From assembly GCF_001194135.2 (NCBI RefSeq), contig NC_068985.1:94467096-94519539 (forward strand): DNA of 52,444 nucleotides, written 5' to 3'. Both the position numbers and the translations under genes were made by a program. Origin of the DNA: Octopus bimaculoides (taxonomy: Eukaryota). Positions 4,482-52,444 of this stretch are shown piece after piece. The notes under the pieces are model-generated. The model saw nothing but the letters and a program-made list of their open reading frames with translations. It was not told the origin of the DNA and made no database searches. Numbering within the stretch: the stretch's first letter is position 1; every line of letters begins with the position of its first letter.

Positions 4482-4575
4482 ATNNNNNNNNNNNNNNNNN
4501 NNNNNNNNNNNNNNNNNNNNNNNNNNNNNNNNNNNNNNNNNNNNNNNNNNNNNNNNNNNNNNNNNNNNNNNNNNN

Positions 4576-4608
<33 letters not shown>

Positions 4609-5864
4609 TATATACATATATGAACCAATGTTTATATCGTTACCTCATAGTTTCGATGGATTGGTAACTAACCGGTATCTTCATTGTATTTTATTATATC
4701 TTAATTAGATTTATAACAATCCTCTTATTTTATTATGATACCACTATATGAAACACAACATATTAATGTGAATCTTGATGATCTCTTATGTTGTTTAAAA
4801 GTTTTACGAAACTAATGTCCTCATAATGCTTCCGATTGGGAACTAATTACATTATTTTGTTTATATAATAATATCTATACCGATTCTTGTGTACAAAGTC
4901 AGCAGATAGACAATTTATGTGTATATGATGCAGCTAAGTCAATAATAGACCAGCATAATTTATACTTAACGTGCATTTGTTTGAGTTTATCTACATATGT
5001 AGCCAATGAAGTAGGGTTGCTCATAATATTCGCTTTAATTGAATGTATATCTGCTAAAAGTCGTTGTTTAATGTTAATAGAGCTTTCTATATATACCTTG
5101 CAGGGTGAGTTAGCAGTTTTTGTTACAATGCACTTATATGTAAGGTTGAACCATCTACATTTGCCTTCTAAAGGACATGATTTTTTTTTAATTTTTACAT
5201 GTGCAATATTTAGTTGTATATTTCTGTTCCGTGGTATTAGATTTAATGGTATTAGTATTATTTCTTATGGCGTATGGTGTTATATTTGAATTTGTTGTGG
5301 ATCATAGATAAAGTATCTCTCATATGAATCTAACATTGATTTCAAAGTGTCAACCTAGTAATTAATAAAATTTGCAGTATTAATCTTAACAGGAATAATC
5401 AACAAAATTTGTCAAGGGGCAATGATAATTAATTGAATTGATATCGATCTCTGTAGATGATGTTAAAAAATACTTCTAACTGCTGTGAATTAGTAACGAG
5501 ACAAAAATTACTAAGTAACCTCTTATTAACAATGTCACAACATAATCCGTTCTGGAGCTGTGTATATTTTAGAAACATTTAGAAGAACGCTAAAATTCTC
5601 TTATGATGTAAAGCGCATTAAAAGAAATCAACCAAATATTAATGTAATTGAGCTGGATAGAATGTCACATATACGGTTTCATTTGATTCAGAAACTTATC
5701 TATACGATTTTGTTTTTTAATCTATTTCTAAATATAGTAGGTTAATTCAGGTCTACATTTATACAATGCGGCATCATTTACTTAAAATGGTTTTGATTAA
5801 GAAATAAGTCGTTTATCTTTTTTGCATTTTAATTATAGATATCCATTATGATCCTCAAGATATA

Positions 5865-8230: not shown

Positions 8231-8428
8231 ATATGGGAGAATATACGAAAAAACAACAACAGACGAGGACAGGTGGTGTAAATAACAAAAGGATGCATTA
8301 GTATGACGTTCGGGAATACGGAAAGTCTTTGATGTTTCGAGCTACGCTCTTCAACAGAAAGAATACGGAGACAAAGAGAAAAACACGGAGAAAAAAATTG
8401 AATAGTGTCCAGTCAACGGTCAATCATG
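8231..8428 (-). mobile_element. Penelope-like non-autonomous repeat with a minimal hammerhead-like motif (family shared with 51160-51342)
   Basis: The reverse complement aligns along its length with 51160-51342; it contains TCTTT-CTGTTGAA-GAGC gta GCTC-GAAACATC-AAAGA. Confidence 0.6.
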
Positions 8429-10220: not shown

Positions 10221-11197
10221 TGTATGTATGTATATATATATATATATNNNNNNNNNNNNNNNNNNNNNNNNNNNNNNNNNNNNNNNNNNNNNNNNNNNNN
10301 NNNNNNNNNNNNNNNNNNNNNNNNNNNNNNNNNNNNNNNNNNNNNNNNNNNNNNNNNNNNNNNNNNNNNNNNNNNNNNNNNNNNNNNNNNNNNNNNNNNN
10401 NNNNNNNNNNNNNNNNNNNNNNNNNNNNNNNNNNNNNNNNNNNNNNNNNNNNNNNNNNNNNNNNNNNNNNNNNNNNNNNNNNNNNNNNNNNNNNNNNNNN
10501 NNNNNNNNNNNNNNNNNNNNNNNNNNNNNNNNNNNNNNNNNNNNNNNNNNNNNNNNNNNNNNNNNNNNNNNNNNNNNNNNNNNNNNNNNNNNNNNNNNNN
10601 NNNNNNNNNNNNNNNNNNNNNNNNNNNNNNNNNNNNNNNNNNNNNNNNNNNNNNNNNNNNNNNNNNNNNNNNNNNNNNNNNNNNNNNNNNNNNNNNNNNN
10701 NNNNNNNNNNNNNNNNNNNNNNNNNNNNNNNNNNNNNNNNNNNNNNNNNNNNNNNNNNNNNNNNNNNNNNNNNNNNNNNNNNNNNNNNNNNNNNNNNNNN
10801 NNNNNNNNNNNNNNNNNNNNNNNNNNNNNNNNNNNNNNNNNNNNNNNNNNNNNNNNNNNNNNNNNNNNNNNNNNNNNNNNNNNNNNNNNNNNNNNNNNNN
10901 NNNNNNNNNNNNNNNNNNNNNNNNNNNNNNNNNNNNNNNNNNNNNNNNNNNNNNNNNNNNNNNNNNNNNNNNNNNNNNNNNNNNNNNNNNNNNCGAACAC
11001 CCGAACGCTCACACACACACACACACACATACTTATTAAGCTACTTGTCATATAGTAACTGTCGTTGATTTAAATTATTTAATCATTTGTCCTCTGCGAA
11101 AGTTAATAACAAGTGTCTGTAATACACCAAGATAGACTTTAACGAATCGTTGCAAATTATCAATCCCCCTCAATCAATTATTCCCAATGACAGTATG

Positions 11198-14671: not shown

Positions 14672-15398
14672 NNNNNNNNNNNNNNNNNNNNNNNNNNNNN
14701 NNNNNNNNNNNNNNNNNNNNNNNNNNNNNNNNNNNNNNNNNNNNNNNNNNNNNNNNNNNNNNNNNNNNNNNNNNNNNNNNNNNNNNNNNNNNNNNNNNNN
14801 NNNNNNNNNNNNNNNNNNNNNNNNNNNNNNNNNNNNNNNNNNNNNNNNNNNNNNNNNNNNNNNNNNNNNNNNNNNNNNNNNNNNNNNNNNNNNNNNNNNN
14901 NNNNNNNNNNNNNNNNNNNNNNNNNNNNNNNNNNNNNNNNNNNNNNNNNNNNNNNNNNNNNNNNNNNNNNNNNNNNNNNNNNNNNNNNNNNNNNNNNNNN
15001 NNNNNNNNNNNNNNNNNNNNNNNNNNNNNNNNNNNNNNNNNNNNNNNNNNNNNNNNNNNNNNNNNNNNNNNNNNNNNNNNNNNNNNNNNNNNNNNNNNNN
15101 NNNNNNNNNNNNNNNNNNNNNNNNNNNNNNNNNNNNNNNNNNNNNNNNNNNNNNNNNNNNNNNNNNNNNNNNNNNNNNNNNNNNNNNNNNNNNNNNNNNN
15201 NNNNNNNNNNNNNNNNNNNNNNNNNNNNNNNNNNNNNNNNNNNNNNNNNNNNNNNNNNNNNNNNNNNNNNNNNNNNNNNNNNNNNNNNNNNNNNNNNNNN
15301 NNNNNNNNNNNNNNNNNNNNNNNNNNNCGGGACTATTTCTGATGCACACTGAATTGAATTCATTAGGGCGAGGGATTTTATATATATATATATATATA

Positions 15399-16731
15399 CG
15401 AGGGTGAGTCAAAATGTAATGCCTTTTTCTTAATTTCATACGACGTTTTTGATAAAAAATAACTGAAAATTTTCCTAGTTACAAATGATTATATCATTTA
15501 AGTTCTGAAATATTTTGTTTCTAACTTTTCAGGTTCTTAGACTGGTAAGGAAAATTCAAAATTGCTGCCCCTAAGAGTTACGCCTAAAACAAAGAGCAGT
15601 GATTGAATTTCTTGTTGCTGAGGGGGAAACCCCTGTGAACATTCAGCGACGATTACAAAATGTTTTTGAGGAAAATACTTTACATTATAGTAATGCACGC
15701 AGGTGGGTCCGTTCTCTGAAATATTAAAAGGTTGGAACTGTGGGTGTAGCCGATAAACCCCGTTGTGGCCGTCTGTCCGCTTCTGTGAATCATGCCAATA
15801 AAGCAAAAGCAGATGCTCTGATCAGAGTAGACAGGCGCATAACTCTTGATGAGTTGGCAGAAAACCTTGAAGTGAGCCATAGAAGTGCTTACAACATAGT
15901 CGAATCACTTTGCTTTTCAAAATTGTGTGCCCGTTGGGTACCGAGAAGGCTGACTACCGATCGCAAGACTCATAGGGTCAATGCCTGCACTGAACTTCTC
16001 GAACAAAGTCAAAGTGACAACACCTTTCGAAGGCTCGTAACAGTTGATGAAACATAGGTTCATCATTATGAACCGGAATCAAAGAGGCAGTCAATGGAAT
16101 GGTGCCACTCTACGTCAACACCACCGAAAAAGTTCAAGATGCAAGAGTCAGCTGGAAAAATCATGGTGACTATCTTCTGGGATGCTGAAGGTGTCATTCT
16201 GGTCGATTTCGTGCCAAAAGGAAAAACAATAAACATTGAGGCCTATATTGAGACCCTGACAAGTCTCAGAGTAAGAATCCAACGAGTAAGACTCAAGTTG
16301 CTAATCGACAATATCCTCCTTCTGCATGACAATGCTCGACCACACACAAGCATCAGGACAAGGGAGACAATTGCCTTATTCGGGTGGACACCTTTACCGC
16401 ATGCTCCATACTCACCAGATTTAGCGCCTTGAGACTATCATCTCTACGGCCCAATGAAAAAGTGTTTGAGAGGCAAACATTATTCCAGTGACGAGGAAGT
16501 GAAATCTTTATTGAAGAAGTGGCTCAAAGAACAGTCAACAGAATTTTACGGGGCAGGGACACATGCTCTCATCAAAGGGGGAACATTGCTATTGAGAGAA
16601 ACGGTGACTATTTTGAGAAGTATGGATGTGATACACAGACGACCAGCTTCATTTCGATGTATGATACACGTTCCTGTGTTGGTAATTATACTTGTCCTAA
16701 ACGAAATGGCATTATTTTTGACTCACCCTCT
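15399..16731 (+). mobile_element. Mariner (Tc1/mariner, DD34D) DNA transposon, near full length (1333 bp), irritans-like
   Basis: Left TIR cgagggtgagtcaaaatgtaatgcc (15399-15423) and right TIR ggcattatttttgactcaccctct (16708-16731), flanked by TA on both sides; internal transposase remnants. Confidence 0.95.
15587..16622 (+). pseudogene. Mariner transposase pseudogene
   Basis: One frame from KQRAVIEFLV through WVPRRLT, VTVDET, HDNARPH, YSPDLAP*DYHL, with 34 residues between the 2nd and 3rd catalytic D. In-frame stops at 15725, 16055 and 16430; a frameshift near 16577 restores ...IERNGDYFEK. Confidence 0.93.
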
Positions 16732-17994
16732 TATATATGGATATTTGATATATACATATATAACTTCCAGTAGTTTGCCGTCGTAACAAATCACGAAATA
16801 GACTTCACATATTGTTTTCAGTGCGCAGAGAAATGGCTAAAATTTACCCTGTTTGTAATTATACCATATATTACATGTAGACGAAAACGGACTTGAAACC
16901 TCGACATTCTTTCATTTGTTAAAAATTAACGATTTGAATATTATTCAAAGTTAAAATATTAGGAAAACAAACTCTATTGCCATTAGAATAAAAATTATCA
17001 GAGGAGATTTCTTATATCCAATCCATTTGTGTCTTGTCTGTTTTGATTGACACATTCCCTTAGCAAATATTTCAAATTAATTTGGACAAGCTCTGGGCTA
17101 TTCTAAAATACTTACATTATGTAGAAGTGAGCGTTTAAACATCACGAATTTTCAAAATGTTGTTTACAAATTTAGCACTTGTGACACGGTACTTATTGGA
17201 TTTACAAATCTCCCAAAAGCAATAAGAGATTTAGAAAATAGACGCTCAAGTGTAAAAGATGAAAACTGAATTCACATGAGAAAACTACATTACACTTTAG
17301 ATATTTACGTAAGAAACAATATTTTCATCATAATATATTGGAAGCAAATCGGTGTGAACAGCATAGATAACTATTTGATAAAATTGTTTTCAAGAAATTA
17401 GATAGCAATGTCTGTTTCCTCACCCAACTGAAATGCTATTGGCATTTATTTAAAGCATAATTTTATGAAGAGGGTTACTTTCTTAAACAGACATCCTGTA
17501 AATTATGAATAAATGTTTTACGTATTTCCCCATGTCAGTTCGCTCTATTTGTACCAGACAAACAAAACTCCCTTTACTCATGTCTGCGAAGAATCTGATG
17601 CACTTTTTCCTTTTTGTATACACCGTGATTTACAGCAAGACATATTCCAGTATGAATGGCATAACGAATATAATCAAAATGCCTTCCATTATAGGGATAA
17701 ACATCAAATGCTAGTATGAGGCTTATTAACGTCTTGTAATAAGAAGGTACTGAGTCACTATTTAGACATTTTGGACTGTAACAAATGTTGGTACCAGAGG
17801 CGAAAATCCTTGAATTGACGGAATGGTTTTGGTCTCTTACATCGATGTTAGCATTTAAACCCGAGTCATTATCTCGACGCTCCAAGCATTCCCCAAATCT
17901 ACCACCCTAATATCACCAACATTAATGACTAGCAGCATTAAGCATAATGATATAACTATATATCAACGTCTTCTGTAATATTCGTTTCAAATAT

Positions 17995-19223: not shown

Positions 19224-20639
19224 TTGCTAATAATAGTATTGGTGATGGCAATAATGCGACCCTGATGAGATGGAGTATCCAGAAATTTGTAATATGTTGT
19301 AATTTGTTACAATATTTTACGAGACATCTTATGATGTGGTTTATTTTTCCGGGATACCCTATTGAAATGTGCATAGGTTTGGCTTATTGTGGTTGTTTCT
19401 GTTATTATAATTGTTGCTGCAATAAAGTATCTTCAATGCATTGATTTTGAGCTCTATCCTTTAAGAGACATGTATACATATATNNNNNNNNNNNNNNNNN
19501 NNNNNNNNNNNNNNNNNNNNNNNNNNNNNNNNNNNNNNNNNNNNNNNNNNNNNNNNNNNNNNNNNNNNNNNNNNNNNNNNNNNNNNNNNNNNNNNNNNNN
19601 NNNNNNNNNNNNNNNNNNNNNNNNNNNNNNNNNNNNNNNNNNNNNNNNNNNNNNNNNNNNNNNNNNNNNNNNNNNNNNNNNNNNNNNNNNNNNNNNNNNN
19701 NNNNNNNNNNNNNNNNNNNNNNNNNNNNNNNNNNNNNNNNNNNNNNNNNNNNNNNNNNNNNNNNNNNNNNNNNNNNNNNNNNNNNNNNNNNNNNNNNNNN
19801 NNNNNNNNNNNNNNNNNNNNNNNNNNNNNNNNNNNNNNNNNNNNNNNNNNNNNNNNNNNNNNNNNNNNNNNNNNNNNNNNNNNNNNNNNNNNNNNNNNNN
19901 NNNNNNNNNNNNNNNNNNNNNNNNNNNNNNNNNNNNNNNNNNNNNNNNNNNNNNNNNNNNNNNNNNNNNNNNNNNNNNNNNNNNNNNNNNNNNNNNNNNN
20001 NNNNNNNNNNNNNNNNNNNNNNNNNNNNNNNNNNNNNNNNNNNNNNNNNNNNNNNNNNNNNNNNNNNNNNNNNNNNNNNNNNNNNNNNNNNNNNNNNNNN
20101 NNNNNNNNNNNNNNNNNNNNNNNNNNNNNNNNNNNNNNNNNNNNNNNNNNNNNNNNNNNNNNNNNNNNNNNNNNNNNNNNNNNNNNNNNNNNNNNNNNNN
20201 NNNNNNNNNNNNNNNNNNNNNNNNNNNNNNNNNNNNNNNNNNNNNNNNNNNNNNNNNNNNNNNNNNNNNNNNNNNNNNNNNNNNNNNNNNNNNNNNNNNN
20301 NNNNNNNNNNNNNNNNNNNNNNNNNNNNNNNNNNNNNNNNNNNNNNNNNNNNNNNNNNNNNNNNNNNNNNNNNNNNNNNNNNNNNNNNNNNNNNNNNNNN
20401 NNNNNNNNNNNNNNNNNNNNNNNNNNNNNNNNNNNNATATATATATATATATATATATATATATGGTAAATGAGTATATGCATATACACGTACAGGTATG
20501 TGCATACCGACATCCACCTGTATGTATAGGTGCATATCTGGGTACAGGGCATTGCAAACAAAACGTAGACAAGAAAACACGCACGCCACATATATATAAG
20601 GCCTACTTGCTTAAAAATGTAAAAGATAAAAGACAAACA

Positions 20640-26249: not shown

Positions 26250-26299
26250 GTGGCTGACCCCTAAGGGTGGATGTTACGAGGTGTTAACAGTAACTGCAC

Positions 26300-26349
<50 letters not shown>

Positions 26350-26354
<5 letters not shown>

Positions 26355-26797
26355 AGTATGTATGAAAGTGATTGGGAAGGAGATGTTCTGGATCGAAGCA
26401 AGTGCAGAGCTGTTGTCAGGACGAGCTGTGATGTCTGGGAGGAAAAGATGTTTCAGCAACTTCAGCTTAAGCGGGCCTGTCGAAAGGGAAAAATTGTAAA
26501 CAATGGAGAGTGTAGGATGTGTATTGTGTGTGATCGCGTTCTTCTGTCAAAAGCAGGATATGTGAATCACATGAAAACACATGAGGGTAGAAATTCCAGA
26601 CACGCTAAATACCAACCGCCTTCTGCGACCTGTGGCATGTGTCACAAGGTTTGTAAAACAATATCCGGACTTAAGAGACATATGCTGGTTCACAGAGGCG
26701 TTTCCTTAGAATCAGATACCAGCGAGCAAGGATCAAGAGGCTTGAACATTTGTCATCTGTGCTGTAGACCTTGTCGCTCAGCAGCTGGACTTCAAAG
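26350..26797 (+). mobile_element. RTE-clade LINE 3' fragment with three C2H2 zinc fingers (truncated by an N-gap)
   Basis: Open frame: SDWEGDVLDRSKCRAVVRTSCDVWEEK...LKRACRKG (RTE C-terminal W..A.DR..WR...KR.RK-type motif), then CIVC-x12-H-x3-H, CGMC-x12-H-x3-H and CHLC...AAGLQ. There are no TGEKP linkers. Confidence 0.75.
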
Positions 26798-29400: not shown

Positions 29401-30391
29401 ATATGTATGTAATTATATATGCACATATGCACATATATATATATATGGNNNNNNNNNNNNNNNNNNNNNNNNNNNNNNNNNNNNNNNNNNNNNNNNNNNN
29501 NNNNNNNNNNNNNNNNNNNNNNNNNNNNNNNNNNNNNNNNNNNNNNNNNNNNNNNNNNNNNNNNNNNNNNNNNNNNNNNNNNNNNNNNNNNNNNNNNNNN
29601 NNNNNNNNNNNNNNNNNNNNNNNNNNNNNNNNNNNNNNNNNNNNNNNNNNNNNNNNNNNNNNNNNNNNNNNNNNNNNNNNNNNNNNNNNNNNNNNNNNNN
29701 NNNNNNNNNNNNNNNNNNNNNNNNNNNNNNNNNNNNNNNNNNNNNNNNNNNNNNNNNNNNNNNNNNNNNNNNNNNNNNNNNNNNNNNNNNNNNNNNNNNN
29801 NNNNNNNNNNNNNNNNNNNNNNNNNNNNNNNNNNNNNNNNNNNNNNNNNNNNNNNNNNNNNNNNNNNNNNNNNNNNNNNNNNNNNNNNNNNNNNNNNNNN
29901 NNNNNNNNNNNNNNNNNNNNNNNNNNNNNNNNNNNNNNNNNNNNNNNNNNNNNNNNNNNNNNNNNNNNNNNNNNNNNNNNNNNNNNNNNNNNNNNNNNNN
30001 NNNNNNNNNNNNNNNNNNNNNNNNNNNNNNNNNNNNNNNNNNNNNNNNNNNNNNNNNNNNNNNNNNNNNNNNNNNNNNNNNNNNNNNNNNNNNNNNNNNN
30101 NNNNNNNNNNNNNNNNNNNNNNNNNNNNNNNNNNNNNNNNNNNNNNNNNNNNNNNNNNNNNNNNNNNNNNNNNNNNNNNNNNNNNNNNNNNNNNNNNNNN
30201 NNNNNNNNNNNNNNNNNNNNNNNNNNNNNNNNNNNNNNNNNNNNNNNNNNNNNNNNNNNNNNNNNNNNNNNNNNNNNNNNNNNNNNNNNNNNNNNNNNNN
30301 NNNNNNNNNNNNNNNNNNNNNNNNNNNNNNNNNNNNNNNNNNNNNNNNNNNNNNNNNNNNNNNNNNNNNNNNNNNNNNNNNNNNNNNNNNN

Positions 30392-50262: not shown

Positions 50263-50723
50263 TAGTATATGTGTTTTTGTATTATCACACTCGATAAATT
50301 CTATTCACTTTCTGGCTGCAGAAAACTTATAGGTATCTATACATTATTGGCACTATAGAATTGCGGCAAGTTTAATGCAATATTTAAATTCATTATTTGT
50401 AATATTTTTGCATTAACTTACATCATGATCTCATGAAAAATGTGAGAAATATACATGCATGTTGCAAGACTGCAATATACATGTATATTGCGACTTCATT
50501 ATACATGATAGAAATAAGAGAATTAAATATGTCATGCATACACACACACATTCACACACACACACATACATCTCAGATATATGTGCATACATTTGAGTAT
50601 ATANNNNNNNNNNNNNNNNNNNNNNNNNNNNNNNNNNNNNNNNNNNNNNNNNNNNNNNNNNNNNNNNNNNNNNNNNNNNNNNNNNNNNNNNNNNNNNNNN
50701 NNNNNATATATATATATATATAT

Positions 50724-51108
50724 AATAGAGGTATTAATATTTCTAAGTCTTTCTAAAGGAGACTACGGCAGCGGTACTGGAAATTAATAGTTATCGCCAA
50801 GCCAACATGGCAGTCCAAAAAATAGGACGAATGCTGCCGTTGATTAGCTCCAACAGGCCATAGCCTCTAGCTACCTATGTGACACACGAACCTGTGTCCT
50901 TTATAAGCTTCGAACAGGGGAGGTCAGCCGCTTCACCTTGCTGATCTGGCATCTACAGACTAGTTTCGGGGTATTGCCCCTTATCAATGTAGAGCAGCCG
51001 AACCCACCAGGCGTCGCTAGTGACCGTCTGTACGAAGGATTATTTATCTAATTTCAGTGGAATACATCCACTGGTTTTCAGCAATAGAGGAATTAATATT
51101 TCTAAGTC
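50724..51108 (-). mobile_element. 359-bp terminally redundant hammerhead-bearing element (retrozyme-like or Penelope pLTR-like)
   Basis: 26-bp direct repeats aatagagg(t/a)attaatatttctaagtc at 50724-50749 and 51083-51108; internal hammerhead fold; (TA)n on both sides; no ORF. Confidence 0.65.
50952..50993 (-). ncRNA. Type I hammerhead ribozyme motif, U3-A8 core variant
   Basis: Minus strand: UCUACA [UUGAUAA] GGGG-caaua-CCCC [GAAA] C-ua-G [UC] UGUAGA. Stem I has 6 bp, stem II has 4 bp, and stem III is minimal and palindromic (ACUAGU); GUC cleavage is predicted between 50958 and 50957. Confidence 0.8.
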
Positions 51109-51113
51109 ACGCA

Positions 51114-51159
<46 letters not shown>

Positions 51160-51162
<3 letters not shown>

Positions 51163-51342
51163 GCCATGATAGATCGCTGACCACTACATTCATATTTTTT
51201 TATTTCTGTGTTCCTTTCTGTTGAAGAGCGTGGGCTTGAAACGTTAAAAACTTTCTCTATTCCCCAGTGTTATACAAATACATCCATTTGTTGTTTACAC
51301 CACCTGTCTTCGTCTGTTGTTTTTTTCGTAAATTCTCCCATA
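51160..51342 (+). mobile_element. Penelope-like non-autonomous repeat (same family as 8231-8428)
   Basis: Aligns with the reverse complement of 8231-8428; contains ctttctgttgaagagcgtgggcttgaaacgtt. Confidence 0.6.
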
Positions 51343-51918: not shown

Positions 51919-51919
<1 letters not shown>

Positions 51920-51972
<53 letters not shown>

Positions 51973-51988
51973 GTCCATCTATCTATCC

Positions 51989-52024
<36 letters not shown>

Positions 52025-52066
52025 GTCAGTCTATCTATCTATTTATTTATCTATCTATCTATCTAT
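51920..52066. repeat. (CTAT)n microsatellite
   Basis: Directly visible. Confidence 0.97.
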
Positions 52067-52067
52067 T

Positions 52068-52444
52068 TTTGGCGACCTCTTGGCATCAGTCTACTGCAAC
52101 TGGCAACACAACGGGAGAATTCCCGGTTTCGTGAGCCGAGGTGCAGTGACATTGCTGAAGAAAGACCCAAACAAGGGAAATTTTATAGATAATTTCAGGC
52201 CCATCACTCTGCTTAACGCAGATTTGAAAATTTTGGCCAAAGTAATAGCCGAGAGGTTGGCGCTTGTCATCGATAAACTGGTCGACAGGGCGCAAACATG
52301 CGTCGTGTCGGGCAGAAGTATCCATGACAACCTCCACCTCATGCACTACATCATGGACAGGGTAGTTAAGGATCCTGGCATGGGTGGGGCGCTGATCAAT
52401 TTAGATCAATCTAAAGCCTTCGATAGGGTCGACCATCGATACCT
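52068..52444 (+). mobile_element. L1/Tx1-clade LINE reverse transcriptase fragment, 5'-truncated, open to the window end
   Basis: Uninterrupted frame not in the ORF track (no stop before the edge): [64 protein letters not shown]...QTCVVSGRSIHDNLHL...ALINLDQSKAFDRVDHRY (RT domains 0-3: NFRPI.LLN.D.KILAK, GR.I.DN, LD.SKAFDRV). Confidence 0.92.

Follow-up and report, generated by a model that had tools for sequence, protein, structure and literature searches.

A probable solo monomer of a retrozyme-like element, carrying a type I hammerhead motif, in a (TA)n tract of Octopus bimaculoides

The closest described systems to the locus considered here are the metazoan non-LTR retrozymes, of which mussel Mg353, coral Amil224 and axolotl Ax330 and Ax353 are named members (Cervera & de la Pena 2020, PMC7229834). 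Single-monomer derivatives of such families have also been documented, in a study that covers vertebrates, three insects and one coral (Li, Clavereau & Pollet 2026, bioRxiv 10.64898/2026.07.22.740005); in Xenopus such monomers are evenly dispersed along the chromosomes and are read as non-transposing offspring of active tandem retrozymes (bioRxiv 10.64898/2026.07.22.740005). A second group of hammerheads resides in the pseudo-LTRs (pLTRs) of Penelope-like elements, where the minimal motif combines a 6-8-bp helix II with a 4-5-bp helix I and leaves one nucleotide unpaired between A9 and 10.1 (PMC4209133). The insertion traits of Penelope-like elements include partial tandems in which a 5'-truncated copy comes first, together with the targeting of microsatellites (PMC8557442, PMC8969392). 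A third system is the hammerhead of newt and salamander satellite 2 (Epstein & Gall 1987; Forster et al. 1988), taken here as it is summarized in PMC4209133 and PMC7229834. For animal retrozymes the reinsertion step from a circular or multimeric template is still regarded as hypothetical (PMC7229834; bioRxiv 10.64898/2026.07.22.740005).

The locus lies at positions 50724-51108 of the window, the whole stretch of 52,444 nucleotides that was analysed. An earlier note, made from the letters alone, had described a non-coding, GC-richer block between (TA)n tracts, bounded by 26-bp direct repeats with a period of 359 bp and one mismatch, and each of these elements was found as stated. The two 26-nt repeats (50724-50749 and 51083-51108) are identical at 25/26 positions with a spacing of 359. 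GC content is 44-53% over 50750-51050 versus about 30-35% in the flanks and 46% over the 359-nt unit, and the 26-mer shares the AT-rich composition of the genome around it. The parts of the locus are as follows.

50604-50705, no strand: assembly gap of 102 N, with TA repeats at both borders (left ...GAGTATATA, right ATATAT...)
50706-50723, no strand: left (TA)9 microsatellite, directly after the N gap, read as one half of the presumed target tract
50724-50749, minus strand: left copy of the direct repeat, AATAGAGGTATTAATATTTCTAAGTC on the plus strand; in the minus-strand sense, the last 26 nt at the 3' end of the full unit
50750-51082, minus strand: non-coding body of the unit, present once, 333 bp and 48% GC; one copy of the repeat completes it to the 359-nt monomer
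51083-51108, minus strand: right copy of the direct repeat, with a single mismatch (A for T at the 9th base)
51109-51116, no strand: 8-nt spacer ACGCATTC between the right repeat and (TA)22
51117-51160, no strand: right (TA)22 microsatellite, read from the sequence

In the sense orientation the layout reads as the last 26 nt of the unit followed by the full unit, about 1.07 units in all, inside a (TA)n tract. The right repeat may thus be interpreted as an upstream copy that was 5'-truncated to its last 26 nt, which would make it a minimal pseudo-LTR or terminal redundancy (PMC8557442, PMC8969392). The spacer ACGCATTC does not continue the unit, since the repeat-adjacent sequence inside the unit reads TTTCTAAAG; it is either a filler ("tail") or a remnant of the target. 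A third copy of the 26-mer is absent from the 52-kb window with up to 3 mismatches allowed, and 100 shuffles gave an expectation of 0 matches. The 102-N gap is most likely an unassembled part of the same (TA)n tract. The insertion traits of Penelope-like elements are thus both seen at this locus, where a truncated copy precedes the full one and the flanks consist of (TA)9 plus the gap on one side and (TA)22 on the other. Both flanks are (TA)n, which makes up only 1.65% of assembled bases. As an argument the (TA)n target is nevertheless worth only about p = 0.02-0.13, because such tracts are very common (31 in 52 kb) and most of the gaps in the window are probably (TA)n as well.

The minus strand of the unit contains a type I hammerhead, in which the slash marks the predicted cleavage site and the segments are assigned as listed.

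50993-50952, minus strand: type I hammerhead, UCUACA-UUGAUAA-GGGG-CAAUA-CCCC-GAA-ACUAGU-C/UGUAGA
50993-50988 and 50957-50952, minus strand: helix I, 6/6 Watson-Crick pairs
50987-50981, minus strand: core UUGAUAA, with U3 at 50987 and A8 at 50982
50980-50977 (GGGG), 50976-50972 (loop CAAUA) and 50971-50968 (CCCC), minus strand: helix II, 4/4 G-C pairs
50967-50965, minus strand: core GAA
50964-50959, minus strand: helix III, the palindrome ACUAGU
50958, minus strand: C17, with cleavage predicted at 50958/50957

The catalytic core of the hammerhead consists of C3, U4, G5, A6, N7, G8 and A9, of G12, A13 and A14, of the A15.1-U16.1 pair and of H17. All conserved core positions are present in this motif except C3 and G8, which are jointly replaced by U3 and A8 such that the Watson-Crick 3-8 pair is kept. 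The three helices are arranged around the core in the type I topology, in which helix I is open and helices II and III are capped. The earlier note had placed a complete minus-strand hammerhead with the cleavage site at 50958/50957, and the motif was found exactly there; the word complete must be qualified by the U3-A8 pair and by a helix III that amounts to 1 bp. The same U3-A8 covariation is known from about 1,300 Schistosoma Penelope-type motifs, among them motifs of the Schistosoma Cercyon element (PMC4209133). It was probably inherited here from a functional master, because two independent decay changes at exactly those sites are unlikely.

How would such a ribozyme cleave? As a hairpin, helix III has a single base pair (A15.1-U16.1) closed by a CUAG tetraloop, and as a dimer it has 6 bp. 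Helix III is palindromic, and therefore the ribozyme should need a partner copy for good cleavage. Structure prediction agrees with this expectation such that the catalytic fold of the monomer (-4.7 kcal/mol) loses to an inactive alternative (-10.3), and the dimer cofolds at a minimum free energy (MFE) of -26.2 kcal/mol with a 6-bp intermolecular ACUAGU helix III. A single pair with a palindromic tetraloop is the newt and axolotl kind of helix III, which cleaves mainly as a dimer, and the dimer dependence predicted here resembles the behavior shown by newt and axolotl hammerheads (PMC7229834).

The hammerhead is not a chance occurrence. The descriptor scan returned a single match in 52 kb of both strands, with a mean of 0.003 matches for the relaxed descriptor and 0/300 for the strict one in dinucleotide shuffles of the window, and 1/20000 shuffles of the unit itself contained a hammerhead match. 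The covariance model R2, built solely from four published, experimentally cleaving retrozyme hammerheads (coral, mussel and two axolotl; Suppl. Table 2, PMC7229834), gave a full-length match of 31 bits (E~1e-6) on the window, where the next best match scored 11.2 bits; the model enlarged by two amphibian relatives raised this to 39 bits (E~3e-10). Rfam 15 reported no hammerhead at the gathering score over the whole window or at E<=10 over 431 nt. Its models likewise miss, at E<=1, the hammerheads of two control loci with the canonical CUGAUGA core, L001 and L002, and for this reason the Rfam result is not counted as evidence against the motif. Genome annotations based on Rfam would accordingly undercount hammerhead elements, given that this motif and two canonical retrozyme hammerheads are missed.

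The architecture of the motif matches the canonical metazoan type, with a helix I of 6 bp, a helix II of 4 bp and no bulge after A9; a short helix III capped by a palindromic loop is also part of this type (PMC4209133). Together with the score against verified retrozyme ribozymes, these features support the assignment of the sequence as a genuine canonical type I hammerhead of the verified non-LTR retrozyme kind, whose cleavage is predicted. Shared with the metazoan retrozymes are the 6-bp helix I, the 4-bp helix II, the GAAAC segment, the short palindromic helix III and the GUC triplet. Loop 2 (CAAUA), which would take part in a loop 1-loop 2 tertiary contact, resembles the loops CACUA, CAAAAA and CGAUA of the compared ribozymes. 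The core differs from theirs in having U3-A8 in place of C3-G8. Compared with the minimal pLTR hammerhead, the motif is unlike in its 4-bp helix II, its lack of a bulged nucleotide and its 6-bp helix I with an extension; it shares with Penelope pLTR hammerheads the type I topology, a palindromic 15.2-16.2 region and the U3-A8 covariation (Cervera & de la Pena 2014, PMC4209133). As far as satellite 2 is described in the summaries cited above, its units fall, like the present one, at about 330-360 nt, and its helix III is likewise too weak to act singly, such that cleavage proceeds through a double hammerhead, a mechanism that is predicted here; no satellite array is present at this locus, and host and unit sequence are unrelated.

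The unit as a whole also resembles a retrozyme. Its 359 nt compare with 224-353 nt in the named metazoan retrozymes (353 nt in mussel Mg353), and like them it is non-coding, has about 46% GC and is predicted to form a stable branched or rod-like circle. More generally, it falls within the retrozyme class of non-coding units of about 150-450 bp that lack LTR, PBS and PPT, and its GC content agrees with a ceiling of about 45-50%. The longest stop-free stretch in the unit is 67 aa and has no match in Pfam. Stop-free stretches of at least 25 aa from its six frames, ten in number and joined into a pseudo-protein as the search query, found no relative among 5.8e9 proteins at E<=1.

Both hairpins that had been pointed out outside the ribozyme are present in the sequence and in the MFE folds, and helix I is prolonged by a longer pairing.

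50881-50898, no strand: hairpin gacaca/tgtgtc, 6-bp stem and 6-nt loop
51055-51073, no strand: hairpin cagtgga/tccactg, 7-bp stem and 5-nt loop
50922-51025, minus strand: long imperfect helix extending helix I, in which the 5' arm (51025-50988) is predicted to pair with the 3' arm (50957-50922)

In the predicted circular fold, the 6-bp helix I is followed by an asymmetric internal loop and then by further pairing, and a rod-like stem carries the ribozyme at its tip (circular MFE -108.1 kcal/mol, z -2.65). The z values range from -2.5 to -3.0, as compared with -1.0 to -3.2 for published retrozymes. This places the unit in the tail of 30 background segments, yet 1-2/30 of these are equally stable, and the paired fraction is the same as in the background. 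Predicted fold stability is thus consistent with the retrozyme class and discriminates weakly.

Relatives of the unit were sought at several scales. BLASTN (word size 7) found no other copy in the 52-kb window, the unit is absent from roughly 70 kb of other retrieved loci, and no relative appeared in six-frame peptide, metagenome, prokaryote genome or viral contig scans. Against the published coral, mussel and axolotl retrozymes there is no similarity outside the ribozyme. When the helix II and helix III pattern was run against the metagenome collection, two contigs matched and nothing else; both are related to the axolotl retrozyme Ax330 outside the ribozyme as well and do not belong to the family of this unit. 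The nearest helix II/III sequence matches in that collection are amphibian-type copies, a further point of resemblance to the newt satellite 2 hammerhead as the cited summaries portray it. Since one copy was seen in the window and the searched collections, that the element is repetitive is something we infer.

What, then, is this locus? Our best reading, which we consider probable, is that 50724-51108 is a solo retrotransposed monomer (359 nt plus a 26-nt redundancy) of a non-autonomous, Penelope-dependent element of the non-LTR retrozyme kind, in which the minus strand represents the RNA of the element and carries the canonical metazoan hammerhead. Tandem master copies elsewhere in the genome would be transcribed, and paired hammerheads could then form a double hammerhead via the palindromic helix III (ACUAGU), by which monomers would be cut out. 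These may be circularized by a host RtcB-type ligase. The reverse transcriptase (RT) and GIY-YIG endonuclease of an autonomous Penelope-like element would nick a (TA)n tract, and copying of the template slightly past one unit would leave a 26-nt partial copy followed by a full copy between the split halves of the microsatellite. In its assembled form the locus itself would allow at most one poor cut and no circle release, because it has one ribozyme whose helix III is weak alone, and on our best reading this copy is a dead-end offspring.

The earlier note had called the unit retrozyme-like, a description that holds for the ribozyme type, size, non-coding character, GC content and fold and fails for the arrangement. 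Metazoan retrozymes occur as head-to-tail arrays, from dimers to multimers, such that two ribozymes flank a unit, whereas the assembled locus comprises one unit, 26 additional nt and just one ribozyme. We therefore class it as a solo monomer, with a retrozyme as its probable origin, and do not count it among the active retrozymes. In this it resembles the Xenopus monomer derivatives, which are also single hammerhead-bearing units; here the unit is known from one copy without a parent family in view. The note had also taken a monomer with a short redundancy as the signature of an integrated circular RNA. The layout is indeed seen, and a circular template is one of three routes that would lead to it, the others being copying from a linear multimer or with a template jump, and duplication of a 26-bp target site; the 26-mer could be such a duplication instead of a redundancy.

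The alternative that survives best, although we regard it as unlikely, is that no separate retrozyme family is involved and that the locus stems from an autonomous Penelope-like element, as a 5'-truncated insertion or as a solo pseudo-LTR fragment, only the non-coding 3' part with the hammerhead having been copied and the 26-mer having arisen as a partial tandem or target-site duplication. The insertion signature at the locus fits this, given that Penelope-like elements show heavy 5' truncation, partial tandems, microsatellite targets including (TA)n, and type I hammerheads in their pLTRs (PMC8557442, PMC4209133, PMC8969392); the truncated copy that precedes the full one, the (TA)n insertion site and the short extra end sequence are all shared with them (Craig et al. 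2021, PMC8557442). The first description of a U3-A8 core came from a Penelope-like family (PMC4209133), and in Xenopus retrozymes and pLTRs are intermingled phylogenetically (bioRxiv 10.64898/2026.07.22.740005). Against this reading stands the ribozyme, whose architecture is canonical and not of the minimal metazoan pLTR type (PMC4209133), and which scores well against a model of retrozyme ribozymes alone. Its place in the middle of the unit, where it caps a long self-complementary stem, is that of retrozyme circles. Unlike a Penelope pLTR, the unit has no RT or GIY-YIG ORF on either side within the window, where the left flank is broken by the 102-N gap, and a test of 20 stop-free segments from the window found no Penelope-type RT or GIY-YIG. 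The sole nearby RT (52100-52442, plus strand) is a LINE-type RVT_1 domain that runs off the window, on the strand opposite to the ribozyme.

The true locus might also hold near-identical 359-bp monomers in tandem, an array that a short-read assembler collapsed to a single unit and its overlap and that would potentially be circle-producing, a reading we consider improbable. The scaffold is a gap-rich draft, with 14 N gaps in 52 kb of which 13 are bordered by microsatellites, and 359 bp is probably longer than the reads if the assembly was a short-read one, as the gaps suggest. One pass through a repeat cycle would give exactly a unit plus a partial unit between unique flanks, and a tandem arrangement is normal for retrozymes (PMC7229834). 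However, the two 26-mers differ at one base, so their overlap is no exact k-mer artefact. The adjacent TA-bordered gap of 102 N is too small for a monomer if its size estimate is right; gap sizes in the scaffold appear to be estimated, since they range from 10 to 953.

A SINE-like or LINE-mobilized element with a chance hammerhead (cf. Schistosoma Sm-alpha), a long 26-bp target-site duplication and incidental TA tracts, or else an old hammerhead exapted for host-transcript processing, is very improbable: the 26-bp direct repeat around a 333-bp insert is formally like a target-site duplication and there are LINE remnants, an RT 1 kb off and a dispersed repeat beside the right TA tract, but 26 bp is long for a LINE-type duplication, no tRNA-like head (ARAGORN) and no convincing A/B boxes or A-rich tail were seen, no gene or exon evidence lies nearby on either strand, and the ribozyme type and partial-tandem layout point to Penelope-type biology. 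Tests for a SINE were negative, with no tRNA-like sequence from ARAGORN, no tRNA, 5S or 7SL from Rfam and no A-rich tail.

The novelty implied by the suggestion of a cephalopod retrozyme family was overstated, as a mollusc and "many other invertebrate genomes" already have retrozymes on record (PMC7229834), and for the giant squid genome 235 Hammerhead_1 matches have been reported (PMC6962438). We nevertheless put forward, tentatively and as a doubtful possibility, that behind this locus lies an undescribed retrozyme family of this genome, characterized by a canonical hammerhead with U3-A8, by solo insertions in (TA)n and by redundancies at varying permutation points. If so, the junctions of its copies across the genome would be a footprint of target-primed reverse transcription from a circular or multimeric template by a Penelope-type endonuclease. 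Such a family would extend animal retrozymes to another lineage and would provide a natural U3-A8 pair in a canonical retrozyme-type hammerhead, the published examples being in Penelope-type minimal motifs. Solo monomers with a short redundancy in a recognizable target would bear both on the choice between circular and multimeric templates and on whether retrozymes select their targets in a Penelope-like way. Taken alone, the single locus is an ordinary transposon remnant without evident effect on a gene.

Other repeats share this neighborhood. LINE remnants are abundant in the window, with the RT 1 kb away, and a dispersed repeat of another kind adjoins the right-hand TA tract. The best relatives of the LINE RT of the window are 50-66% identical, and a mariner pseudogene in the window has its best relative on a Tara Oceans contig, at 76% amino acid and 83% nucleotide identity.

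A type I hammerhead ribozyme occupies 50993-50952 on the minus strand, reading in successive parts UCUACA, UUGAUAA, GGGG, CAAUA, CCCC, GAA, ACUAGU, C and, beyond the cleavage site, UGUAGA. Helix I (6 bp) and helix II (4 bp of G-C, with a 5-nt loop) are perfectly paired and are accompanied by a GAA box, an A15.1-U16.1 pair and a GUC cleavage triplet. Both the motif and the predicted cut between 50958 and 50957, as proposed in the earlier note, are confirmed. The core departs from consensus at two bases, U3 for C3 and A8 for G8, and since positions 3 and 8 are paired in the active fold this is a compensatory double change. Such a core is already known and not new to this ribozyme: U3-A8 covariation is on record from ~1,300 Schistosoma motifs, found via the Cercyon Penelope-like element (PMC4209133). 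Judged by its sequence, this is a true hammerhead of the retrozyme type.

A purpose-written descriptor that accepted either core pair and required ≥4 bp in helix I and ≥3 bp in helix II returned the ribozyme as its sole match on both strands of the window, against 0.003 matches per window in dinucleotide-preserving shuffles and 1 in 20,000 shuffles of the unit. Covariance models were built from the ribozymes of experimentally studied retrozymes, namely coral Amil224, mussel Mg353 and axolotl Ax353 and Ax330, whose sequences PMC7229834 lists in its Supplementary Table 2. The four-ribozyme model matched the ribozyme full-length at 31 bits (E ~1e-6 by rough calibration), with the next best match at 11 bits. 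A scan of the metagenome collection with the helix II and III pattern retrieved two contigs only, L001 (8-49, minus strand) and L002 (2305-2346, plus strand) of ENA assembly ERZ1739169, both bearing canonical type I hammerheads; prokaryote and viral collections gave no match. Addition of these two control loci raises the ribozyme score to 39 bits, although this model is not independent because the loci were retrieved by a pattern taken from the window motif. Their flanks match Ax330 beyond the ribozyme at 73-88% identity, which places them in an amphibian retrozyme family and indicates amphibian-type retrozyme DNA in the sample. Rfam 15 reports no hammerhead, and relaxing the cutoff to E≤10 over 431 nt does not change this, but at E≤1 it also misses both controls, in which the CUGAUGA core is perfect and the architecture alike; its negative is therefore uninformative. 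A CUGAUGA...GAAA string at 19256-19300 (plus strand), with several non-standard pairs, scored 10-11 bits with both hammerhead models and was judged a chance match (E ~0.6-1.2).

In animals a distinction is drawn (PMC4209133) between 'canonical' type I motifs, with 6 bp in helix I, 4 bp in helix II and 1-2 bp plus a small palindromic loop in helix III, and the 'minimal' motifs of Penelope pseudo-LTRs, in which helix II has 7-8 bp, helix I has 4-5 bp and an additional nucleotide follows A9. The window hammerhead belongs to the canonical kind, which in corals lies in retrozyme tandem repeats, the minimal types lying in autonomous elements (PMC7229834). Its 15.1-16.1 segment, ACUAGU, is palindromic, as are those of five of the six comparison ribozymes in a table of parts. 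Because a 2-nt hairpin loop is impossible, helix III of the monomer comprises one base pair capped by a CUAG tetraloop, as in the newt and axolotl hammerheads, whose monomers cleave poorly and dimers well (PMC7229834). The predicted folds agree with that situation: in ViennaRNA the 42-nt monomer is less stable in its catalytic fold (-4.7 kcal/mol) than in an alternative burying G5-U7 (-10.3), and joining two copies through a 6-bp intermolecular ACUAGU helix brings the energy to -26.2.

The element is arranged on the plus strand as follows.
50604-50705, N gap
(TA)9
50724-50749, first copy of the 26-mer direct repeat
333 bp of unique sequence
51083-51108, second copy of the 26-mer
ACGCATTC
(TA)22

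Sequence, composition and protein searches bear out the description of 26-mer repeats flanking a GC-richer non-coding block between (TA)n tracts. The two 26-mers differ by one mismatch, and a third copy is absent from the window at ≤3 mismatches, with none expected by chance. The block is 44-53% GC in surroundings of ~30-35%, and its longest reading frame is ≤67 codons. It contains no Pfam domain, and its stop-free stretches of at least 25 aa in six frames have no relatives among 5.8 billion proteins. The two small hairpins also described lie where proposed and recur in predicted folds. Folded as a circle, the minus-strand monomer has -108.1 kcal/mol (z -2.65 over 200 shuffles, -2.54 on repeat) and the plus strand -103.7 (z -3.0). 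In the predicted circle helix I extends into a long imperfect stem, 51025-50988 with 50957-50922, so that the ribozyme would cap a rod-like arm. Published retrozymes treated in the same way give z of -1.0 to -3.2, and of 30 background window segments, whose mean is -0.5, one reaches -2.6 or lower; the predicted fold is consistent with a retrozyme and insufficient alone to identify one.

The ribozyme orientation makes the minus strand the sense strand, which gives the layout 5'-(TA)n-GAAUGCGU-[last 26 nt of unit]-[full 359-nt unit]-(TA)n-3'. Penelope-like insertions likewise place a 5'-truncated copy directly before a full copy, favor microsatellites and can carry short extra 'tails' at one end; a (TA)n bias is noted for Naiads, with a zinc-finger-like motif that they share with Neptune and Nematis proposed as mediator (PMC8557442, PMC8969392). 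Tracts of at least six TA units make up 1.65% of assembled bases, yet most gaps are probably (TA)n too, and for this reason the (TA)n insertion is suggestive, not compelling, as a Penelope-like target sign. The window is a gap-rich, AT-rich draft scaffold (34% GC), probably built from short reads, with abundant microsatellites and transposon remnants. Thirteen of its 14 N gaps are bordered by microsatellites, mostly (TA)n (for example 4484-4575, 10248-10993, 29449-30391 and 50604-50705). Long (TA)n tracts were evidently not crossed by the assembler, and repeat copy numbers in the scaffold are therefore lower bounds.

The redundancy shows that the copied template exceeded one unit. The circular template proposed earlier fits, as would a multimeric linear transcript or a template jump. 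The 26-mer may instead be a target-site duplication, being as AT-rich as the surrounding genome; however, with (TA)n on both flanks an uninterrupted tract is the simplest state before insertion, in which case the repeat would belong to the insert, as a terminal redundancy or mini-pLTR. The locus may also be a collapsed array, as the gap-rich, probably short-read scaffold would allow, but the 26-mers differ by one mismatch and the neighboring gap is small and TA-bordered. A cDNA of the linear self-cleaved monomer is ruled out, since the copy ends lie ~125-235 nt from the cleavage site.

The retrozyme reading is thus supported in part: the ribozyme type, the retrozyme dimensions and properties of the unit and the Penelope-like signature of its junctions hold, whereas the locus as assembled is a solo monomer, unable to release a circle. 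No second copy lies in the window, nor in ~70 kb of DNA fetched via relatives of its mariner and LINE remnants. Monomer derivatives of retrozymes are documented (bioRxiv 10.64898/2026.07.22.740005), PMC7229834 describes animal retrozymes from a mollusc and across many invertebrate phyla, and hammerhead matches are reported for a cephalopod genome (PMC6962438). The main value of the locus would lie in a genome-wide survey of such junctions. Separately, a degenerate type I hammerhead lies at 4716-4764 (minus strand) of ctg13043l (ENA ERZ22157276), a long contig of eukaryotic origin in which hAT, mariner and LINE genes are found as well. This hammerhead scores 30.7 bits with covariance model R1 and shares 78% identity with the Amil224 ribozyme region across 50 nt.

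Other features of the window are listed below.
8234-8375, minus strand, and 51199-51340, plus strand: dispersed repeat, two copies, 83% identical (144 nt aligned)
15397-16790, plus strand: mariner-family transposase pseudogene in three frames (Transposase_1, E 5e-20)
26271-26797, plus strand: ORF with C2H2 zinc fingers (zf-C2H2_4, E 4e-6)
52100-52442, continuing past the window end, plus strand: LINE-type reverse transcriptase fragment (Pfam RVT_1, E 2e-11)

Both dispersed-repeat copies terminate at a TA-rich tract, and that at 51199-51340 lies immediately right of the (TA)22 flanking the ribozyme element, so several insertions have gathered at one TA-rich spot. The reverse transcriptase fragment, preceded by (CTAT)n at 51919-52070, is of LINE rather than Penelope type and lies on the strand opposite the ribozyme; its nearest relatives (50-66% aa) include GCA_024449705.1 (66% aa, 73% nt) and two Logan runs (64% aa, 75% nt). 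The mariner pseudogene has its closest DNA relative in a Tara Oceans marine metagenome contig of 1.7 kb (83% over 1344 nt), the sole pointer to the type of host. An N gap cuts the zinc-finger ORF, which follows a (GA)n-encoded ERERER run and is probably a piece of a transposon protein.
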